Sequence record: PV754031.1
Direction: 5' to 3' (one strand)
Length of the DNA: 64,000 bases
Part shown: piece after piece, positions 21,062 through 48,157 of the stretch
Position numbering within the stretch: the first letter of the stretch is position 1
How the letters are laid out: the number at the start of each line of letters is the position of its first letter
Position numbers and translations under genes: made by a program
Notes under the pieces: generated by a model
Database searches by the model: none
What the model was told of the DNA's origin: nothing
The model's input: the letters and a program-made list of their open reading frames with translations, nothing else

Positions 21062-21276
21062 TAACTGCATTTTATAAAAATACTGATAGTTATTATTTAA
21101 TACAGGACTGACGTAAATTAGTTTCTGGATTCAAACTTTATACCCATAAACTCAAAAAAGAAGATATGGAAATTGTAAGATGAAAAATAAATAATACTCA
21201 GATTGTAATAATATGTAGTGAACATAGTGTTCGTTACGATCTGCTGATAGCAGATTATAGCGTCTATGTTGTAATG

Positions 21277-21303
21277 AAAAAAATTTGAGATTTATATTAC
21301 TAA
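21277..21303 (+). promoter_or_regulatory. Early promoter of chmA
   Basis: AAAAAAATTTGAGATT-TATATTAC-TAA, 26/27 identical to the gp68 promoter. Confidence 0.85.
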
Positions 21304-21372
21304 ATTGAATCTAGTATACTAAGTACTTAGGTTCTTCTTGATCAAGAAACCATAATCGTAAAGGTATTTAAA

Positions 21373-23253
21373 ATGGCTGTTAACGAAAACGAAATCGGCA
21401 CCGTTCAAACTCAAGCTACCACTCCGGCTCCGCAACCCACTGCACAGCGTCAAGCTCAACGTCCTGCTGGCGCACCTGGGTCAACTACTGGCATTAACCA
21501 TCTAATGCGTCGCTCTGGGCGGCTAGATGGTTCTGATGCTCGTTCAGCAGATGCCCTACAAGTATTCACTAAAGTAAAAGAAGAAGCAATCCGCCATCAG
21601 GACCTACCTGATGATTTCGATATCCATCGTTTCGATCGCGATGCGCAACAAGTTGGTATGGCTGGTCTACTAATTGTTAAACTAGCTAAAGATATCAATG
21701 GTTCCATGAAGGCATTCGTTCGTACTCTAGTACTCGATAACCTACCTGGTACTCGCATCCGTCCCCGTACCCACAAGATCAACAATGGTCTAACTGATGA
21801 CATCATTGAAGAGAAGGTACTACCGCGTGATGTATTCACTGCTCAATACTGGAGCAAGATCGGCGAATTCCTACGGAACCGTTACAACATCCCTGGTCTA
21901 GAAGTACTATCTGCCGGTCCCCGTGCAGTGTATGCTGACTTCGACTTCAAAGATGAACTAGCTGTTAAGAACCTACTAGTTGAATCTGTTAATATCTGTG
22001 AAGATGCTATCGCACGTCGTAACAATGAGACTCCGTTCTCTATTGCGACCCACATCAAAGCAGAAAACGAACAGCTTACCTGCAACCTAGACTACAATGG
22101 TATTCCGGTTAAAGATAGCTGCGGTAATCCGATTCGTTCTGACCTGGTTATCTCCACTAGCCGTGGTAAGAAAACCAACGTACCTGAGAACGAGTTCTAT
22201 GATACCGATAGCCAGCTAAACCAAGTTAGTCTATTCGTAGACCTACATTGGACTCCGACCACTGGCCAGCAACAAGGTATGTTCGGCGTAACTCTACCTG
22301 GTGCAGTTCTACCTCCGCAGTTCACTCCTTACATCGTTATCACTGACGTTCGTAAGGCTTCCTGGATCCAAGCATGGACTCTAGAAATGTGGCTGTTCGC
22401 ACTTGGTAATGCGTATCGTGCAACTGCATCCCAGGCATGGGCTCGTACCCTAATGCCGAAGATCGCTACCAGCAAGATGCGTGATATTGGTGCACTTGGT
22501 TATTACTCAGAGCTAGGTAAAGCGATTGAAACTCGCACCGAAGCATTCATGGCAGACGACAGCAACTTCGTAATGCTAATGAACAAGATGGTTAACCAGA
22601 ACCCTGCATTCCAGATCGATATCGATCCGATGGGTGACAACTCTGCTCTTGAGCAAGTAGTCCTAGATGCAGCTGGTGGCGTAAACCAAGCTCGTGCAGT
22701 TAGCCTGATCTTCCAAGCTCTAACTAACCTATATGGCACTGATTTCCGTCAGTTCTATAACCTAGCTGAAGCTGGTCCGATCATCTTTGACAACCATCAT
22801 GAAGTAGACCTCGGTCACTACACTGATGAGCATGGCGAACTAAGTGACCGTCGTGATCTTGACGTTCTAGGTGCCATGAACATGTCTGAAGGTAACGATC
22901 AAGAGTGGAAGACCTGGTATGCTACTCAAGTAGGTAATGACCACATTGTGCGTCGTATGAATAACAGTAAAGGCTTCGACAAGATGTACCTAGGTAACGT
23001 TACCTATACTGGTCGTGCTCGTCGTCTAACCTTTAACCCGAAATTCATCACCGCAATGGATGCCGCAGCAGCAGCAGCTGGTGTAACTGTAACCATGGAA
23101 AACCTAATTACCAACTTCGGTCAACAGCGCTTCGCTGGTTACACCGGTATGGGTAACATGGCTGTTTCTGGTAGTGCACAAGTTGGCATGGCTGGCAGCA
23201 TGGGTCAAACTTACGGCGCTCCTTCCTATAATGCACCGGGTACCTGGTACTAA
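21373..23253 (+). CDS. chmA: Chimallin, phage nuclear shell protein (gp54)
   Basis: 626 aa; [15 protein letters not shown]-terminus and flexible termini match the recalled protein; position directly upstream of the nvRNAP beta-prime gene. Confidence 0.93.
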
Positions 23254-23580
23254 TAGGAAATACCTCGGTAGATAGGGATGTTAAATAAGTAACATCCCGA
23301 TTCTAATACTGCGACCCTGGTTCACTTCGGTGATAACGGTTAGGAGTAGGTTCCGTGAAGTAATCGACTAGTGGACTTAGTCTAGGTCGACCTATCACTA
23401 CACGAGGATGATAGATCACTTAACCGAAAGGAGTTACTCAAAAGGTAACGTGTGATCAAAAACTACAATGGATGGTAAATGAGACTAGTGCCGGTATGCT
23501 ACAAAGAAGAGCGGAGGTTAAGCTTTGTAGATGACGCTAGGCTCGGGCCAGGCTCCGTTGGTGGTCCATTGTAAAAACTG
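23254..23580 (+). ncRNA. Candidate structured non-coding RNA or structured 3' UTR of chmA
   Basis: No ORF; multiple helices including two perfect 9-bp stems and an 8-bp stem, a UUCG loop and a 7-bp pseudoknot; bounded by a terminator. Confidence 0.65.
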
Positions 23581-23585
23581 ATATA

Positions 23586-23622
23586 GCGGCTCCTTCGGGG
23601 GCCGCTTATATCTCCTTTTTTT
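23586..23622 (+). terminator. Intrinsic terminator
   Basis: GCGGCTCC-TTCG-GGGGCCGC followed by a T tract. Confidence 0.85.
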
Positions 23623-23647
23623 GTTAATCGATAAATAGGAGTTTGGT

Positions 23648-24784
23648 ATGGGTCTTTATGCCAAAGTTGTTGATCATGATGAAGTACATGATCAATTTAC
23701 GGGTAAACGTATTTATGCCAATGATTACAATACGAGTAACTCAGATGAGAAAGAAGAATTTGATAGGCATTTCTATTCTCATTTCCAAGATTCAGAAGCA
23801 ATTGAAAGTAGCGTAAGTTGTGATTGTCGAGCAATCGAAGACGCACATAAACTCGGAGTAATCTGTGATATTTGTAATACTCCAGTTGTCAATACTTCTA
23901 GCCGCCCTATCGAACCATCAATGTGGGTTCGTACACCAAAACATGTACGTAGTCTAATTAACCCACGTTTAATCATTATGCTAACCGGATATCTAGTAAC
24001 TAAAGAATTCGATTTCTTAGCATATCTAACTGATACTTCTTATCGATACGATGTGGAATCTATTGGTTCTAAAGAAACACGCAGAAAAGTAGATAGGCTA
24101 CTGCATCGAGGATTTGAAAGAGGATTAAATCACTTCATTGATAATTTCAATGAGATCTTCCAATTCCTACTAGATGCAAATATTATTTCTAATAATAAAT
24201 CCGAATTCGCTCAATTCGTTGCTCAGAATAAAGATAAGTTATTCCCTAAATATTTACCAGTTCCTTCTAAACTCTGTTTCGTAGCAGAATCAACCACATC
24301 TGGTACTTACTTAGATAAACCAATTGAAGCAGCAATTGATGCTACCTTAACCTTCGCTAGTATTGATGCATCATCTGTACCACTTAGTCCAATTAAAGCT
24401 CAGAATAGGACTATGCGAGGACTAAGACTATATGGCCAGTTCTACGAGATCTACGCAAAATCACGAATTGCTCAAAAGCCTGGTCTTGCTCGGCGTCACA
24501 TGTTTGGTGCTCGTCTCAACGCTACGGCACGTGCAGTAATCACTTCTATTAGTGACCCGCATGATTATGATGAATTACATATCCCTTGGGGAGTAGGTTG
24601 TCAATTATTAAAGTATCATCTAACTAACAAGTTAAAAGCTAAGTTTAACATGACAACTCGTGAAGCATTCTCATTTGTATATGAGAATGTACTTCAATAT
24701 AACCAAATCATCGCTGATCTATTTAAAGAGTTAATTGCAGAGGCCGCACCATATAAAGGAATGGGTTGCACTTTTCACCGAAAT
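23648..24784 (+). CDS. rpoC: nvRNAP beta-prime N-terminal subunit (gp55), exon 1 of 3; spliced product 487 aa
   Basis: CDC..CDIC zinc site and NATARAVITS; ends ...FHRN, which continues as PTLQRG in exon 2. Confidence 0.93.
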
Positions 24785-25089
24785 TAATTTGTATATTAAT
24801 ACTAAATGGTTTCCTTGTAATAGAAATATTACTCGACAAAACTCCTTTAATTGCTGGGACATCTCAATGAGACAATCAGCAGCGAAGCTTTCCAGAAATG
24901 GATTGAACGTTCAACGACTATCGAAAGGCACGAAAGTGAACCGAGTAGAGTAGAGTCAAGTGACTCGAAATGGGGAGCACCTTACTGGGTAATGCCAAAG
25001 GTGAAGATATAGTCTGGTCTGCATGGTGACATGCAGCTGTCTATTATTAATAGACGGGATAAGCTTAACGAACTTATCTGAACACAACG
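24785..25089 (+). mobile_element. Group I intron 1 (305 nt, phage IA2-like, no endonuclease)
   Basis: P AATTGCTGGGA, Q AATCAGCAG, R TTCAACGACTA, S AAGATATAGTC; P1 GAAAU/GUUUC with U.G at the 5' splice site; terminal G; removal restores RN|PTL. Confidence 0.93.
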
Positions 25090-25197: not shown

Positions 25198-25690
25198 GGA
25201 CAACTAACTAAATAAGGTAAAAACAATGGAACAAAACGGAGTAGTGTCCGTCTTTGATCCGGCTTCATTTAAAATTGAATATGAAGTGCTTGATAAATAC
25301 CTTATTAAGTTAATCAAGTCTAGTTCCCCCAGTGAGTAATCATTGGGGTGAGTTCTCTCTAATTGCTGGGATATCCTGTTAAACTAATCTACCACTGCGA
25401 GTCGAAAGACAAAGCCAAGGTTTGAAAAAGATTAGGTAGGGCCAATCAGCAGCCAAGCTCCGTAACATTCCATTTAGGAATAGGAGAAGGTTCAACGACT
25501 ATTACGGTATCAGGTGCACCGGTCCTAGAAATAGGATGTAGGGTCAAGTGACTCGAAATGGGAGACACCCCACTCTGAAAGGAAGGGTGAAGATATAGTC
25601 TGGTCTGCATGGTGACATGCAGCAGGTGGTAATTATCATGTGGTAATTATACTACCGGGTATGGATTAACGACCCATACTGAACATAACG
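25198..25690 (+). mobile_element. Group I intron 2 (493 nt) splitting the catalytic N|ADFDGD motif
   Basis: Same P/Q/R/S cores, GNRA-capped hairpin CCCCAGTGA-GTAA-TCATTGGGG, ends GAACATAACG; removal gives APNADFDGD. Confidence 0.92.
25226..25339 (+). CDS. 37-aa mini-ORF inside intron 2 (possible homing endonuclease remnant)
   Basis: TAAGGT SD; MEQNGVVSVFDPASFKIEYEVLDKYLIKLIKSSSPSE. Confidence 0.5.
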   Translation: MEQNGVVSVFDPASFKIEYEVLDKYLIKLIKSSSPSE

Positions 25691-39512: not shown

Positions 39513-39819
39513 AATTAATATCCATCCATCTCTCAGGAATGGATATTGTCAAATTGCCTGCTTGATCTCGAAAGAGTCAAGTAAATCCTCTCTAATTGCT
39601 GGGACATCTCAATGAGACAATCAGCAGCGAAGCTTTCCAGAAATGGATTGAACGTTCAACGACTATCCGGTTACGCGGAGTACACTCAAGCGAGTGGAAA
39701 TGGGAGGGACCTGACCACCTAGGGTGAAGGTTAAGATATAGTCTGGTCTGCATGGTGACATGCAGCTGCCTGCAATACGAGAGGCGGGGTAAGCGTAGCG
39801 AACTTACCTGAACATAACG
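39513..39819 (+). mobile_element. Group I intron 3 (307 nt, no endonuclease)
   Basis: P/Q/R/S cores; P1 GGUAAU/AUUGCC places the U.G pair at 39512; removal gives HGG|KGVIC, equivalent to bacterial HGNKGV. Confidence 0.93.
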
Positions 39820-46086: not shown

Positions 46087-47651
46087 AAAAAAGTTGACAG
46101 CATGTCAATAGGGATTAAGTGTGGGAAACGTTCTTTAAATTTAGTAGCAGCAGGTGACTCACATACTGGACAATTCCAACTTGTAATTGCAATCATTCCA
46201 ATTAGTTGTGAATCAATGAAGTTACTCACCGCATTAATAAAGCGGTCATTATATTCCGGTGTGGATAGAATATTAGTTAAGAACTTTTCAATAGTTTCAC
46301 GATTAGTGGTTGCAGTACGAATATTGTCTTCAGAACTTTCACCATCGTCATCTTCACGTACTTTAATTTCTTTAACAAAATGTGAGAACTGACGGGCAAT
46401 AGAGATCTTTTGTAAACGTGCAATATACTGAGAACGTTGCGGACCATCGACTGGTTCATTAAAACTACCTTGAGTCATATCGATAATTGAGTTAATCCAA
46501 CTATCACCAGACTCTCGGCGATCAGCAATTGTACACATCTCAAGAACAACACCAACGTCACCAAACATTTCAGTTACTTGAGTTTCAATACGGAATCCTT
46601 CTTTATAAGTCTTAAGATCAGATTCAGTACATGCATTAAACTTACGTGCAATATATTTCTTTTGTTCTTCTGAGAATGCCAGTAGATCATATTGAACAAG
46701 CGTTGACATATTAAGTTTCGCTGTTTCAATATGGTTACATGTATTGGCATCTGCAATGCATGGATAACTATAATTAAATCCATCTGGATACATAGTCGCC
46801 GCTAGTGCGTGATGCAAGAACGGCTCATCAGCTACTGAGATAACATGCTCTAGATCAGTTGGGGTGTTGAACTTATAGTTGGATTGAATAACACATGCAA
46901 GTGCTAAACTACTAACCATGTTAAGTAACACAGCTGCCATGTTTGAGAACAGCATACCTTTTGATTCAGCGCCTAGCCGGATCTTTAATTGTGCTAGACG
47001 TGCTTGTAGGGCAGCTACTTCAGTACCAGTAGGTGCACGTAGTTTTACCCAAATACCTGAATGAGGTAGGAAAGTATCATATGGCGTACCGATGTTAGCT
47101 TTACGTGTTAGGAAAACTAGAGTTTCATCATCGGTCATTTTACGACCATTGGTATTAAATACAGGTCGGCCAGGTCGAATGATCTTTTCACCATAAGGAA
47201 TTTCACTAGACCATTCAGAACCTTCTCGGGCAGTTGCACCGATTGGTGCATCTTCAACAATAGAGTGAGCTAAGCCTTCCAGAATAGCAGCTGTCCACTT
47301 TACACCGTCACTAGTGTCATCTACTTTATTATCAGCAAATGCTTTAAATAGTTCTTTATTGTGATCCAGGAAATTATAAACAGTCTGGGGATTCTCACGT
47401 AGTAAAGTAAGAATGCTAGCACTATCTTTAATAGCCGGTTCAGAAGCATCCCGGATATTTCCAGTTTTAGCATTACGTGGAATACGTAGTTTAATTTCTT
47501 TTTGATCAGGAACGAAAGGTGGAGTTTCCACCTCGTCATTATTTTCAATACTAGAGTCAGGATCGTGTTGCGCATTGATCTCATCAATTTGATCTAGTAA
47601 ATTCTCTTCTGGAGTATCATCGTACTCATTATCGAAGTCAGCAGTAGCCAT
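46050..47651 (-). CDS. Conserved gp77-like protein (CxxC; possible tail or baseplate assembly chaperone)
   Basis: 533 aa, NCPVCES; ends LSTFFTL.. across the slippery site; GGAG SD. Confidence 0.85.
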   Translation of the reverse strand: MATADFDNEYDDTPEENLLDQIDEINAQHDPDSSIENNDEVETPPFVPDQKEIKLRIPRNAKTGNIRDASEPAIKDSASILTLLRENPQTVYNFLDHNKELFKAFADNKVDDTSDGVKWTAAILEGLAHSIVEDAPIGATAREGSEWSSEIPYGEKIIRPGRPVFNTNGRKMTDDETLVFLTRKANIGTPYDTFLPHSGIWVKLRAPTGTEVAALQARLAQLKIRLGAESKGMLFSNMAAVLLNMVSSLALACVIQSNYKFNTPTDLEHVISVADEPFLHHALAATMYPDGFNYSYPCIADANTCNHIETAKLNMSTLVQYDLLAFSEEQKKYIARKFNACTESDLKTYKEGFRIETQVTEMFGDVGVVLEMCTIADRRESGDSWINSIIDMTQGSFNEPVDGPQRSQYIARLQKISIARQFSHFVKEIKVREDDDGESSEDNIRTATTNRETIEKFLTNILSTPEYNDRFINAVSNFIDSQLIGMIAITSWNCPVCESPAATKFKERFPHLIPIDMLSTFFTLAASKSNRMV

Positions 47652-47662
47652 TTAAAACTCCA

Positions 47663-48157
47663 TTATTGTTGAATTAGTTTTTCGTCCCAACCAGCTTCTC
47701 GAAGAGTGCCGATCATCGCTAGGATTACACCATCAATACCGCGTTCAATAGCACCTTCAATACCAGTGTATTTAGTAACAAGTTCACTGATGAGTTTTAG
47801 TTCATCTTCATTATTTGCTGGACCAGCCTTACCTTGATGTTGTGCATATAGGACACTGATAATTTTAGTTAGTCGATTAAGGTCAGCAATAACTGTTTGT
47901 AGGTTCTTTTGGAATCCAGTAGGATCAGATAACGTCGGAATGATTTCATTGATCTTATTGATAACTGGATTAATGAATACTTCAGTTTGTAGAATACGTT
48001 TACCTACGGAACCTGCTAGTACATTGACAACATCCCAACCATCACGGTTAAGAATATGATCAGCTGCGGCAGCTGATGCTCCAACTGCACGTTCAAATAG
48101 ACGTAGAGTCTTTTCCTGTTCTTTAGTTAGAGTTGGTTCTTTAGCTTTATTTGACAT
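47663..48157 (-). CDS. Conserved hypothetical protein (gp78-like)
   Basis: 164 aa with GGAG SD. Confidence 0.8.
   Translation of the reverse strand: MSNKAKEPTLTKEQEKTLRLFERAVGASAAAADHILNRDGWDVVNVLAGSVGKRILQTEVFINPVINKINEIIPTLSDPTGFQKNLQTVIADLNRLTKIISVLYAQHQGKAGPANNEDELKLISELVTKYTGIEGAIERGIDGVILAMIGTLREAGWDEKLIQQ

Follow-up and report, generated by a model that had tools for sequence, protein, structure and literature searches.

The 394-nt spacer between chmA, the nuclear shell gene of a phiKZ-type jumbo phage, and the neighboring nvRNAP β′ gene holds an array of three RNA modules (I, II and III) that fold independently; it is about 310 nt in length and is situated after the stop codon of chmA and ahead of a terminator hairpin. 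Comparison with related phages has shown the spacer to be non-coding and folded as plus-strand RNA, under selection for its structure and for specific loops. As judged from the same comparison, the array is accessory and exchanged between phages, is not core to nucleus assembly, and has Module III as its best-supported part. As far as Rfam 15 and the literature searched show, all three modules are undescribed RNA motifs. Among nucleus-forming jumbo phages, phiKZ serves as the model, and none of its early genes is better studied than chmA; even so, the nucleotide stretch of highest conservation in this part of the genome is an RNA that has gone unannotated, some records mis-annotating it as two tiny ORFs.

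Genomic Setting of the Spacer

The window, by which is meant the whole 64,000-nt stretch of record PV754031.1 that was analyzed, comes from a phiKZ-type jumbo phage. Positions 22800–24200 are 100% identical to Pseudomonas phage Bobae (PV754031), at the same coordinates, and 98.9% identical to phiKZ. In phiKZ itself (AF399011), the spacer corresponds to 47,529–47,922, an offset of 24,275 from the window coordinates. The chmA ORF (21373–23253, plus strand) encodes a nuclear shell protein 99–100% identical to ChmA/PHIKZ054 of phiKZ-type phages; it is the gene upstream of the structured element, which by position falls within its 3′ UTR. Alignments of ChmA with the proteins of 201phi2-1, Psa21 and Phabio reach the last residue and, since this is so for 201phi2-1, no chmA exon is missing. 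On the other side, a ribosome-binding site (AGGAG) and ATG at 23637–23650, also on the plus strand, mark the gp55-type nvRNAP β′ gene, whose first exon starts at 23648. A gp55-type gene is the downstream neighbor in every relative, and it begins with a conserved MGLY both in relatives that carry the element and in those that do not. A ChmA profile search of IMG/VR recovered 26 loci, 25 of which extend far enough downstream, and the order of chmA followed by a gp55-like gene is kept in all 25.

Several other features occur in this neighborhood. The 311 nt upstream of chmA (21062–21372) lack a convincing gene, the only annotations there being two tiny CDS on the minus strand; the literature puts the early and middle promoters of PHIKZ054 in this stretch. 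The window also encodes three group I introns (RF00028, Rfam, 79–89 bits). Those at 24787–25036 and 25302–25622 interrupt the gp55/56-type nvRNAP β′ gene, which is uninterrupted in PhiPA3 and HPP-Temi, and the third (39537–39765) lies in another RNAP gene. Blastn against PA1C places the second exon joint of the β′ gene at 25198/25691, and the small CDS annotated within the three introns in the Bobae record look like over-calls. In PA1C itself, the gp55-type gene (L001, 3383–3420) has a stop about 20 codons after the conserved ATGGGTCT start, and the record annotates a later start (3418). This could be either a sequencing frameshift or a real difference and, because of the early stop, the PA1C gp55 identities were disregarded.

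Folding, Covariation and Coding Capacity

A first-pass annotation of this DNA had described the spacer as GC-richer than its surroundings, free of ORFs, and far more structured than a terminator needs to be, and these descriptions have in effect held. The spacer, which runs for roughly 370 bases up to the end of the terminator, has a minimum free energy of −123.7 kcal/mol, versus −100.3 ± 6.0 for dinucleotide shuffles (z = −3.9), with none of 100 shuffles folding as well. Its GC content is 45%, compared with 36.7% for the whole window, though chmA itself reaches 47.7%. The comparative set is small, comprising three P. aeruginosa phage genera and three uncultured phages, and within it the RNAalifold consensus of nine phages of the phiKZ type and the PA1C/PS119XW type contains 110 pairs, with standard pairs in 99.6% of 989 cells. 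In this whole-element alignment, 8 pairs have changed on both sides versus 0–1 in slid controls, where the 3′ partners of the pairs are shifted and the double changes recounted. The check that the annotation had asked for, conserved structure with covariation in the spacers of relatives, has accordingly turned up both compensatory and G-U-compatible changes.

Many of the single changes in the element convert A-U to G-U or U-A to U-G, and these preserve pairing only when the element is read as plus-strand RNA. Because such substitutions are strand-specific, a reading at the level of DNA was rejected. They thus weigh on the proposal that the spacer is a DNA-level element, such as an origin, a packaging signal or an array of protein-binding sites, or that it houses small genes. 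Its many inverted repeats would suit the former, and the Bobae record (PV754031) annotates two small “hypothetical protein” CDS inside the element, at 23303–23419 on the minus strand and at 23479–23574 on the plus strand. One of them lacks a start codon in all eight of the further relatives compared; stops or frameshifts disrupt the other in relatives. A small protein-coding gene was rejected on these grounds, since neither reading frame is conserved, and both annotated CDS are probably gene-caller artefacts; several other records contain similar calls. With the pairing tied to the plus strand and the frames decayed, a DNA-level or coding role is extremely improbable.

Architecture of the Modules

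Module I (23264–23406, plus strand, as are all features of the array) is a four-way junction defined by RNAalifold and pair counts. Its closing helix, CTCG/CGAG (23264–23267/23403–23406), is found in the RNAalifold consensus, as are its three arms. The first arm combines TAGA/TCTA with a 9-bp hairpin, GGGATGTTA/TAACATCCC (23275–23283/23290–23298), and the second (23307–23348) is an irregular stem capped by CAC-TTCG-GTG, a UUCG cap; both are also plain in the sequence. The third (23355–23398) pairs GTGAAG with CTATCAC around a further helix visible in the sequence, TCGACTAG/CTAGGTCGA (23364–23371/23382–23390). Double compensatory changes occur in the closing helix, TAGA/TCTA, the 9-bp hairpin and the third arm. 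The helices named by the first-pass annotation are all present in the sequence, and only the upkeep of one of them failed: CTATCA/TGATAG is broken in five of the nine relatives and competes with two covarying helices, CTCG/CGAG and GTGAAG/CTATCAC. PhiPA3 has a Module I of the same layout with different stem sequences and a third arm expanded by about 170 nt, and the module was found only in P. aeruginosa chimalliviruses. The 3′ UTR of L030 shares by eye an GUAGAUAG-hairpin-UCUA arrangement with Module I; homology is not claimed because the covariance model R2 did not detect it.

Module II (23414–23457) is a small three-way junction, again identified by RNAalifold and pair counts. Its GATCAC/GTGATC helix (23414–23419/23452–23457) encloses CC-GAAA-GG, a 2-bp hairpin, together with GTTAC-TCAAAAG-GTAAC. 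In PhiPA3, the corresponding helix is GAACCAC/GTGGTTC and the stems are therefore compensated; the second hairpin is different. In phiHQ, Module II is kept beside a foreign 5′ module. The chmA 3′ UTR of Phabio (L015, 4406–4465) gives a weak covariance-model match (E 0.77) with the same three-way-junction layout at an identical genomic position and is possibly a distant Module II homologue. A search with the Module II core pattern found phage PA7 as the sole match in IMG/VR and no match in the metagenome and genome collections.

Module III (23465–23572), identified by covariance model R1 and pair counts, is a larger three-way junction. Its closing helix is ACAATGGA/TCCATTGT (23465–23472/23565–23572), the second helix spans 23481–23490/23535–23544, and the third (23497–23506/23523–23533) carries a 16-nt loop, AAGAGCGGAGGUUAAG (23507–23522). 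A small hairpin, CCAG-GCUCCG-UUGG, lies at 23548–23561. When ten distinct sequences are compared, pairing holds in 98.4% of cells and changes on both sides affect 20 of 37 pairs, versus 1–4 in slid controls, with covariation in 7/8, 8/10 and 5/10 pairs of the long helices. Three loops (GGUAAA, AAGAGCGGAGGUUAAG and CCAGGCUCCGUUGGUGG) never vary, nor do the small hairpin and the candidate kissing pairs, CGGAG (23512–23516) with CUCCG (23553–23557). Such a loop–loop interaction is possible, and covariation neither supports nor refutes it or the small hairpin, because these never vary. In phages whose ChmA is only 44% identical, the stems of Module III have been almost fully replaced and the loops are 100% identical. 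Invariant loops on replaced stems therefore argue for old descent under selection, and the comparison suggests that it is the loops that serve as functional surfaces.

Where model R1 detects Module III, it does so exactly once per phage and always in the chmA 3′ UTR, including those of the uncultured phages L028, L040 and L051; it has no match in PhiPA3 (its 3′ part included), Psa21, 201phi2-1 or Phabio, or elsewhere in the window. A search with the Module III pattern returned three loci from IMG/VR (PA7, L028 and L040), one new homologue from metagenomes (L051), and no match in the plasmid collection. Two other metagenome matches and five in bacterial genomes were dismissed as chance, R1 aligning only the fixed bases of the pattern.

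Searches for Known RNA Classes

An Rfam 15 search of the whole window at the gathering threshold gave only three matches to RF00028, all outside the spacer, and a sensitive scan of 23100–23750 (E ≤ 10) gave terminator-type noise of no more than 20 bits. The spacers of related loci likewise had no Rfam match. The annotation’s statement that no Rfam family could be recognized is upheld by these scans, which found none in the spacer even at E ≤ 10. A group I intron was considered and rejected: the spacer has no RF00028 match at E ≤ 10, compared with 79–89 bits for the three true introns of the window, and the spacer interrupts neither neighboring gene, ChmA and gp55 both being complete. ARAGORN found no tRNA or tmRNA in the whole window. 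Searches with nhmmer and covariance models found no second copy of the element in the window or in related genomes; it is single-copy in each genome and always at the chmA–nvRNAP site. Pattern and BLAST searches found no element in bacterial genomes or plasmids.

Full-text literature searches found no description of the element. The region is not mentioned in the phiKZ dRNA-seq, Grad-seq and ONT-cappable-seq papers or in an antisense-oligomer study, and the ncRNA searches of the phiKZ transcriptome and Grad-seq work do not list it (PMC8244752, PMC8545117, PMC10914365). Its absence from these lists may reflect size filters or the lack of a discrete RNA species.

The Terminator Hairpin and Possible Attenuation

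The array is followed by a terminator-like hairpin with a U7 tract (23580–23622), which has a 14-bp stem and is conserved beyond the phages that carry the modules. The hairpin, GATATAGCGGCTCC-TTCG-GGGGCCGCTTATATC (23580–23612), is followed by TCC and seven T (23616–23622). The strong terminator claimed for this end of the spacer has fared well as to its hairpin, which forms with a pairing probability of about 1, and less well as to its T-run, which starts 3 nt after the stem, so that a simple terminator scan did not flag it. A G+C-rich hairpin followed by a U-tract is nevertheless the hallmark of intrinsic termination, and on this modeled fold an intrinsic terminator is plausible. The hairpin is nearly identical in PA1C, PhiPA3 and phiHQ (98% over 44 nt) and is recognizable in 201phi2-1, D6, Psa21, Phabio, Viktualia and most uncultured relatives inspected.

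The literature credits PHIKZ054 with early and middle promoters and assigns it to an operon of six genes (PMC8244752); for the gp55 homologue of 201phi2-1, no promoter was detected, the nearest early one lying about 3 kb upstream (PMC11512511). Taken together, these observations would be in keeping with a partial terminator that separates chmA from the RNAP genes. Co-transcription of the element with chmA, as had been suggested earlier, is likewise plausible from position and from the operon reported for PHIKZ054 (PMC8244752).

One way the array could conceivably act is as a cis attenuator, in which the modules together, or Module III by itself, would work as a riboswitch-like sensor that tunes read-through past the terminator into the nvRNAP genes. 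The array sits directly upstream of the terminator and the β′ gene; the nvRNAP genes seem to have no promoter to themselves, none having been found for the 201phi2-1 homologue (PMC11512511), and PHIKZ054 is assigned to an operon of six genes (PMC8244752). Moreover, Module III is aptamer-like, a three-way junction that combines covarying helices with conserved unpaired nucleotides in its invariant loops, as riboswitch aptamer domains do. There is also a sequence repeat: the loop of the small hairpin, CCAGGCUCCG (23548–23561), repeats GGCUCC of the terminator 5′ arm (23587–23606). No other upstream segment pairs as well with the 3′ arm; this pairing (−13.5 to −14.6 kcal/mol) is much weaker than the terminator hairpin, and it holds in the window, SL2, L028 and L040.

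The other half of a riboswitch, a mutually exclusive antiterminator that overlaps both the aptamer and the terminator 5′ arm, was however not found. The terminator forms at a probability of about 1, and no upstream segment competes for its 5′ arm (pairing probability 0.0000), the best upstream duplexes reaching −8.7 to −13.2 kcal/mol at positions that are not conserved. A linker of 8–10 nt separates the closing helix of Module III from the terminator, so that there is no overlapping antiterminator, and close relatives have the same terminator and the same downstream gene with unrelated modules or with none. Attenuation is accordingly a distinctly unlikely role for the array.

Distribution and Exchange of the Modules

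Between phiKZ-type and PA1C-type phages, the spacer is 83–89% identical, versus 48–66% for the flanking coding DNA and about 49% for ChmA protein. In all, 25.4 kb of the 64-kb window aligns to 90 kb of PA1C sequence; in 150-nt windows of this portion, the median identity is 67% and the 99th percentile 83%, and the spacer, at 82–91%, is the single top conservation island. The ChmA of PA1C is 65% identical to that of PhiPA3 versus 49% to that of phiKZ. The PA1C element, yet, goes against this ChmA relationship: it is 85% identical to that of phiKZ, with Module III reaching 92%, whereas its similarity to that of PhiPA3 is only patchy. This phylogenetic incongruence speaks for exchange.

Module content differs among relatives. 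PhiPA3 has Modules I and II followed by a different 3′ part, and phiHQ has a module of about 300 nt (module B) in place of I, followed by II and III. Module III occurs alone in L028 and L051, and behind another 5′ module (X) in L040. In 9 of the 25 IMG/VR loci, the gap between chmA and gp55 is 12–87 nt and, where inspected, holds hardly anything besides the terminator; in the others it is 144–874 nt, with varied content. The clade of Psa21 and D6 is especially informative, as its members have ChmA proteins that are 83–96% identical and a terminator and ribosome-binding region that are 84–96% identical, with six different states between stop codon and terminator. These are nothing (D6, where about 80 nt remain in all, the D6-type spacer being 87 nt), E (L025 and L029), F (L030), III (L028 and L051), X + III (L040), and B + Y (Psa21). 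Varied content before the same terminator in close relatives means that the insertion site is fixed and the cargo exchangeable. With modules swapped, replaced or absent even at 83–96% ChmA identity, the array is therefore an accessory, recombining array of RNA cassettes.

The distribution bears on two earlier suggestions. A single ncRNA or structured 3′ UTR element had been proposed, and the element is indeed structured, conserved and non-coding and runs from stop codon to terminator; it consists, however, of three separable modules and not of one unit. A part in the fate of chmA mRNA, in ChmC binding or in nucleus assembly had also been put forward as possible; a core role in mRNA fate or assembly is not supported, in view of the nine loci with the shortest gaps and of the close relatives with other modules or none. 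As to nucleus assembly in particular, there are relatives that retain chmA yet lack the element or bear unrelated modules.

A generic 3′ stabilizer or localization signal, which would slow 3′-to-5′ decay of chmA mRNA or place the message, faces the same nine loci. The high folding stability of the spacer, its place in the 3′ UTR of a gene that is essential and has both early and middle promoters, and the long structured chmA 3′ UTRs of unrelated sequence in several other chimalliviruses are what such a signal would predict. A barrier to decay, though, needs no invariant 16–17-nt loops across phages whose stems have turned over, and the primary-sequence conservation of the element is far above that of chmA itself. 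This explanation is clearly improbable.

Module B is a second structured RNA, found in phiHQ (L003, 1194–1500), Psa21 (L012, 4256–4560) and Ralstonia phage RP13 (L020, 2400–2570), and it has no Rfam match. The phiHQ copy is homologous to the Psa21 chmA 3′ UTR (71% identity, compensated stems) and unrelated to Module I. Its stems CCCAGU/ACUGGG, CUCGAU/AUCGAG and CCAGAU/AUCUGG covary, and ACUUACGGU/ACCGUA is a candidate pseudoknot. In RP13, the core of module B lies just upstream of a tRNA-Leu gene, with its stems again compensated; the 171-kb RP13 record was not among the ChmA tblastn matches listed. Unrelated structured modules also occupy the chmA 3′ UTR site in other Pseudomonas chimalliviruses (L013, 4259–4483; L015, 4253–4536; L016, 4262–4517; and L024, L025, L029, L030, L032 and L034). 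Some small motifs recur among these, namely a GGGAUCGAAAGGUCCC hairpin in 201phi2-1 and Phabio, a CCUAAAUACUGG motif in 201phi2-1, Viktualia, L032 and L034, and GCUAG..GGAUGACGGC in L024, L034 and Viktualia.

Could the modules be selfish or relic mobile DNA, that is, degenerate intron-like elements or cassettes spread by a homing endonuclease whose gene lies elsewhere, with no function for the phage? Their patchy distribution, sharp insertion site and horizontal exchange would be expected of such DNA, three group I introns lie nearby in RNAP genes, and the module B core recurs beside a tRNA gene in an unrelated Ralstonia phage. On the other hand, there is no Rfam intron match even at E ≤ 10, no gene is interrupted, no endonuclease ORF is present, and each genome has one copy. 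Moreover, covariation at the RNA level and invariant loops indicate selection on the RNA itself, and a purely selfish origin is very unlikely.

Possible Functions of the Array

The reading that we prefer is that the modules are specific binding platforms on the chmA transcript, working in trans or in cis; on the sequence evidence, it has about an even chance of being correct, and the attenuator, stabilizer and selfish-element readings are weaker. On the preferred reading, plus-strand transcription would make the three modules the 3′ UTR of chmA mRNA and, wherever it reads through into the nvRNAP genes, an intercistronic leader as well. The modules would be insertions behind the stop codon, placed ahead of a terminator hairpin that is older than they are and widely conserved. 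As accessory cassettes, they would pass among Pseudomonas chimalliviruses by recombination and be kept by selection on RNA structure and a few invariant loops. Each could then present a specific platform for a protein or another RNA, with the invariant loops of Module III probably forming the functional surface; the binding partner itself is pure inference. Because the array rides on a transcript that the literature describes as early and middle, infected cells would contain it within minutes of the start of infection. In trans, it might serve as a sponge or decoy, possibly once the A-rich linkers have been processed, and in cis it might act on the fate of the chmA transcript.

A bolder version of the binding-platform reading would make the chmA–nvRNAP site a hot spot of interchangeable RNA cassettes, the RNA counterpart of the accessory and anti-defense islands that encode proteins. 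The modules would then be decoys for, or sensors of, host or phage factors, of high affinity and made in large amounts in the first minutes, before the shell closes, and Module III could represent a new aptamer class. We consider this version rather unlikely. Were a decoy or sensor role to be borne out, host takeover by jumbo phages would gain an RNA layer, and the modules would be relevant to the engineering of therapeutic phiKZ-like phages.

Whatever their role, the spacer yields at least three new RNA motifs (I, II and III) with defined structures, and natural variants in which modules are present, absent or swapped make function directly testable. For elements of phage 3′ UTRs, it is unusual that structured-RNA cassettes replace one another at a single site behind the shell gene. 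The comparison also cautions that the element is an accessory, and not part of the core nucleus program.

Comparison with Known RNA Systems

Terminating riboswitches and leader attenuators resemble the array in placing a structured domain with invariant loops just upstream of an intrinsic terminator and an operon. They differ from it in that the array has no antiterminator overlapping an aptamer and no Rfam riboswitch match, and in that the gene downstream is the same with or without a module. Group I introns are likewise structured RNAs of a few hundred nucleotides that occur in phiKZ-type phages, with a patchy distribution and horizontal spread, whereas the element has a different architecture, interrupts no ORF and matches no covariance model (E ≤ 10). 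GOLLD and ROOL are large structured orphan RNAs of phages, 500–800 nt in length and represented in Rfam. The element reaches no Rfam threshold, unlike these, and shares with them a conserved complex fold carried by phages.

Similar in position are the 3′-UTR-derived ncRNAs of virulent Pseudomonas phages, namely 3′UTR_PHIKZ298 of phiKZ and ncRNA1 and ncRNA2 of PAK_P3 (PMC8545117, PMC10914365). Small RNAs of this kind sit in the interval from stop codon to terminator of the parent gene and share its terminator, and the element has this placement in all relatives. Like those ncRNAs, it is structured, seemingly has no promoter of its own, and belongs to the same phage group. They are, however, 100–210 nt long, were picked up as abundant RNAs in their own right, as discrete species, and have no modular build reported for them (PMC8545117, PMC10914365). 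The array is about 310 nt long with three modules and has no sequence or Rfam relationship to them.

A parallel in organization comes from the 3′ UTRs of flaviviruses, where xrRNA, dumbbell and 3′ stem-loop elements give rise to sfRNA, an RNA product that acts as a decoy. The flavivirus elements depend on the stalling of a 5′–3′ exonuclease and belong to RNA viruses of eukaryotes. There is no homology between the two systems, and exonuclease resistance and a decoy product belong to the flavivirus side of the comparison. What both have in common is a series of independently folding viral modules that are gained, lost and duplicated between lineages and that display conserved loops and pseudoknot-type contacts.
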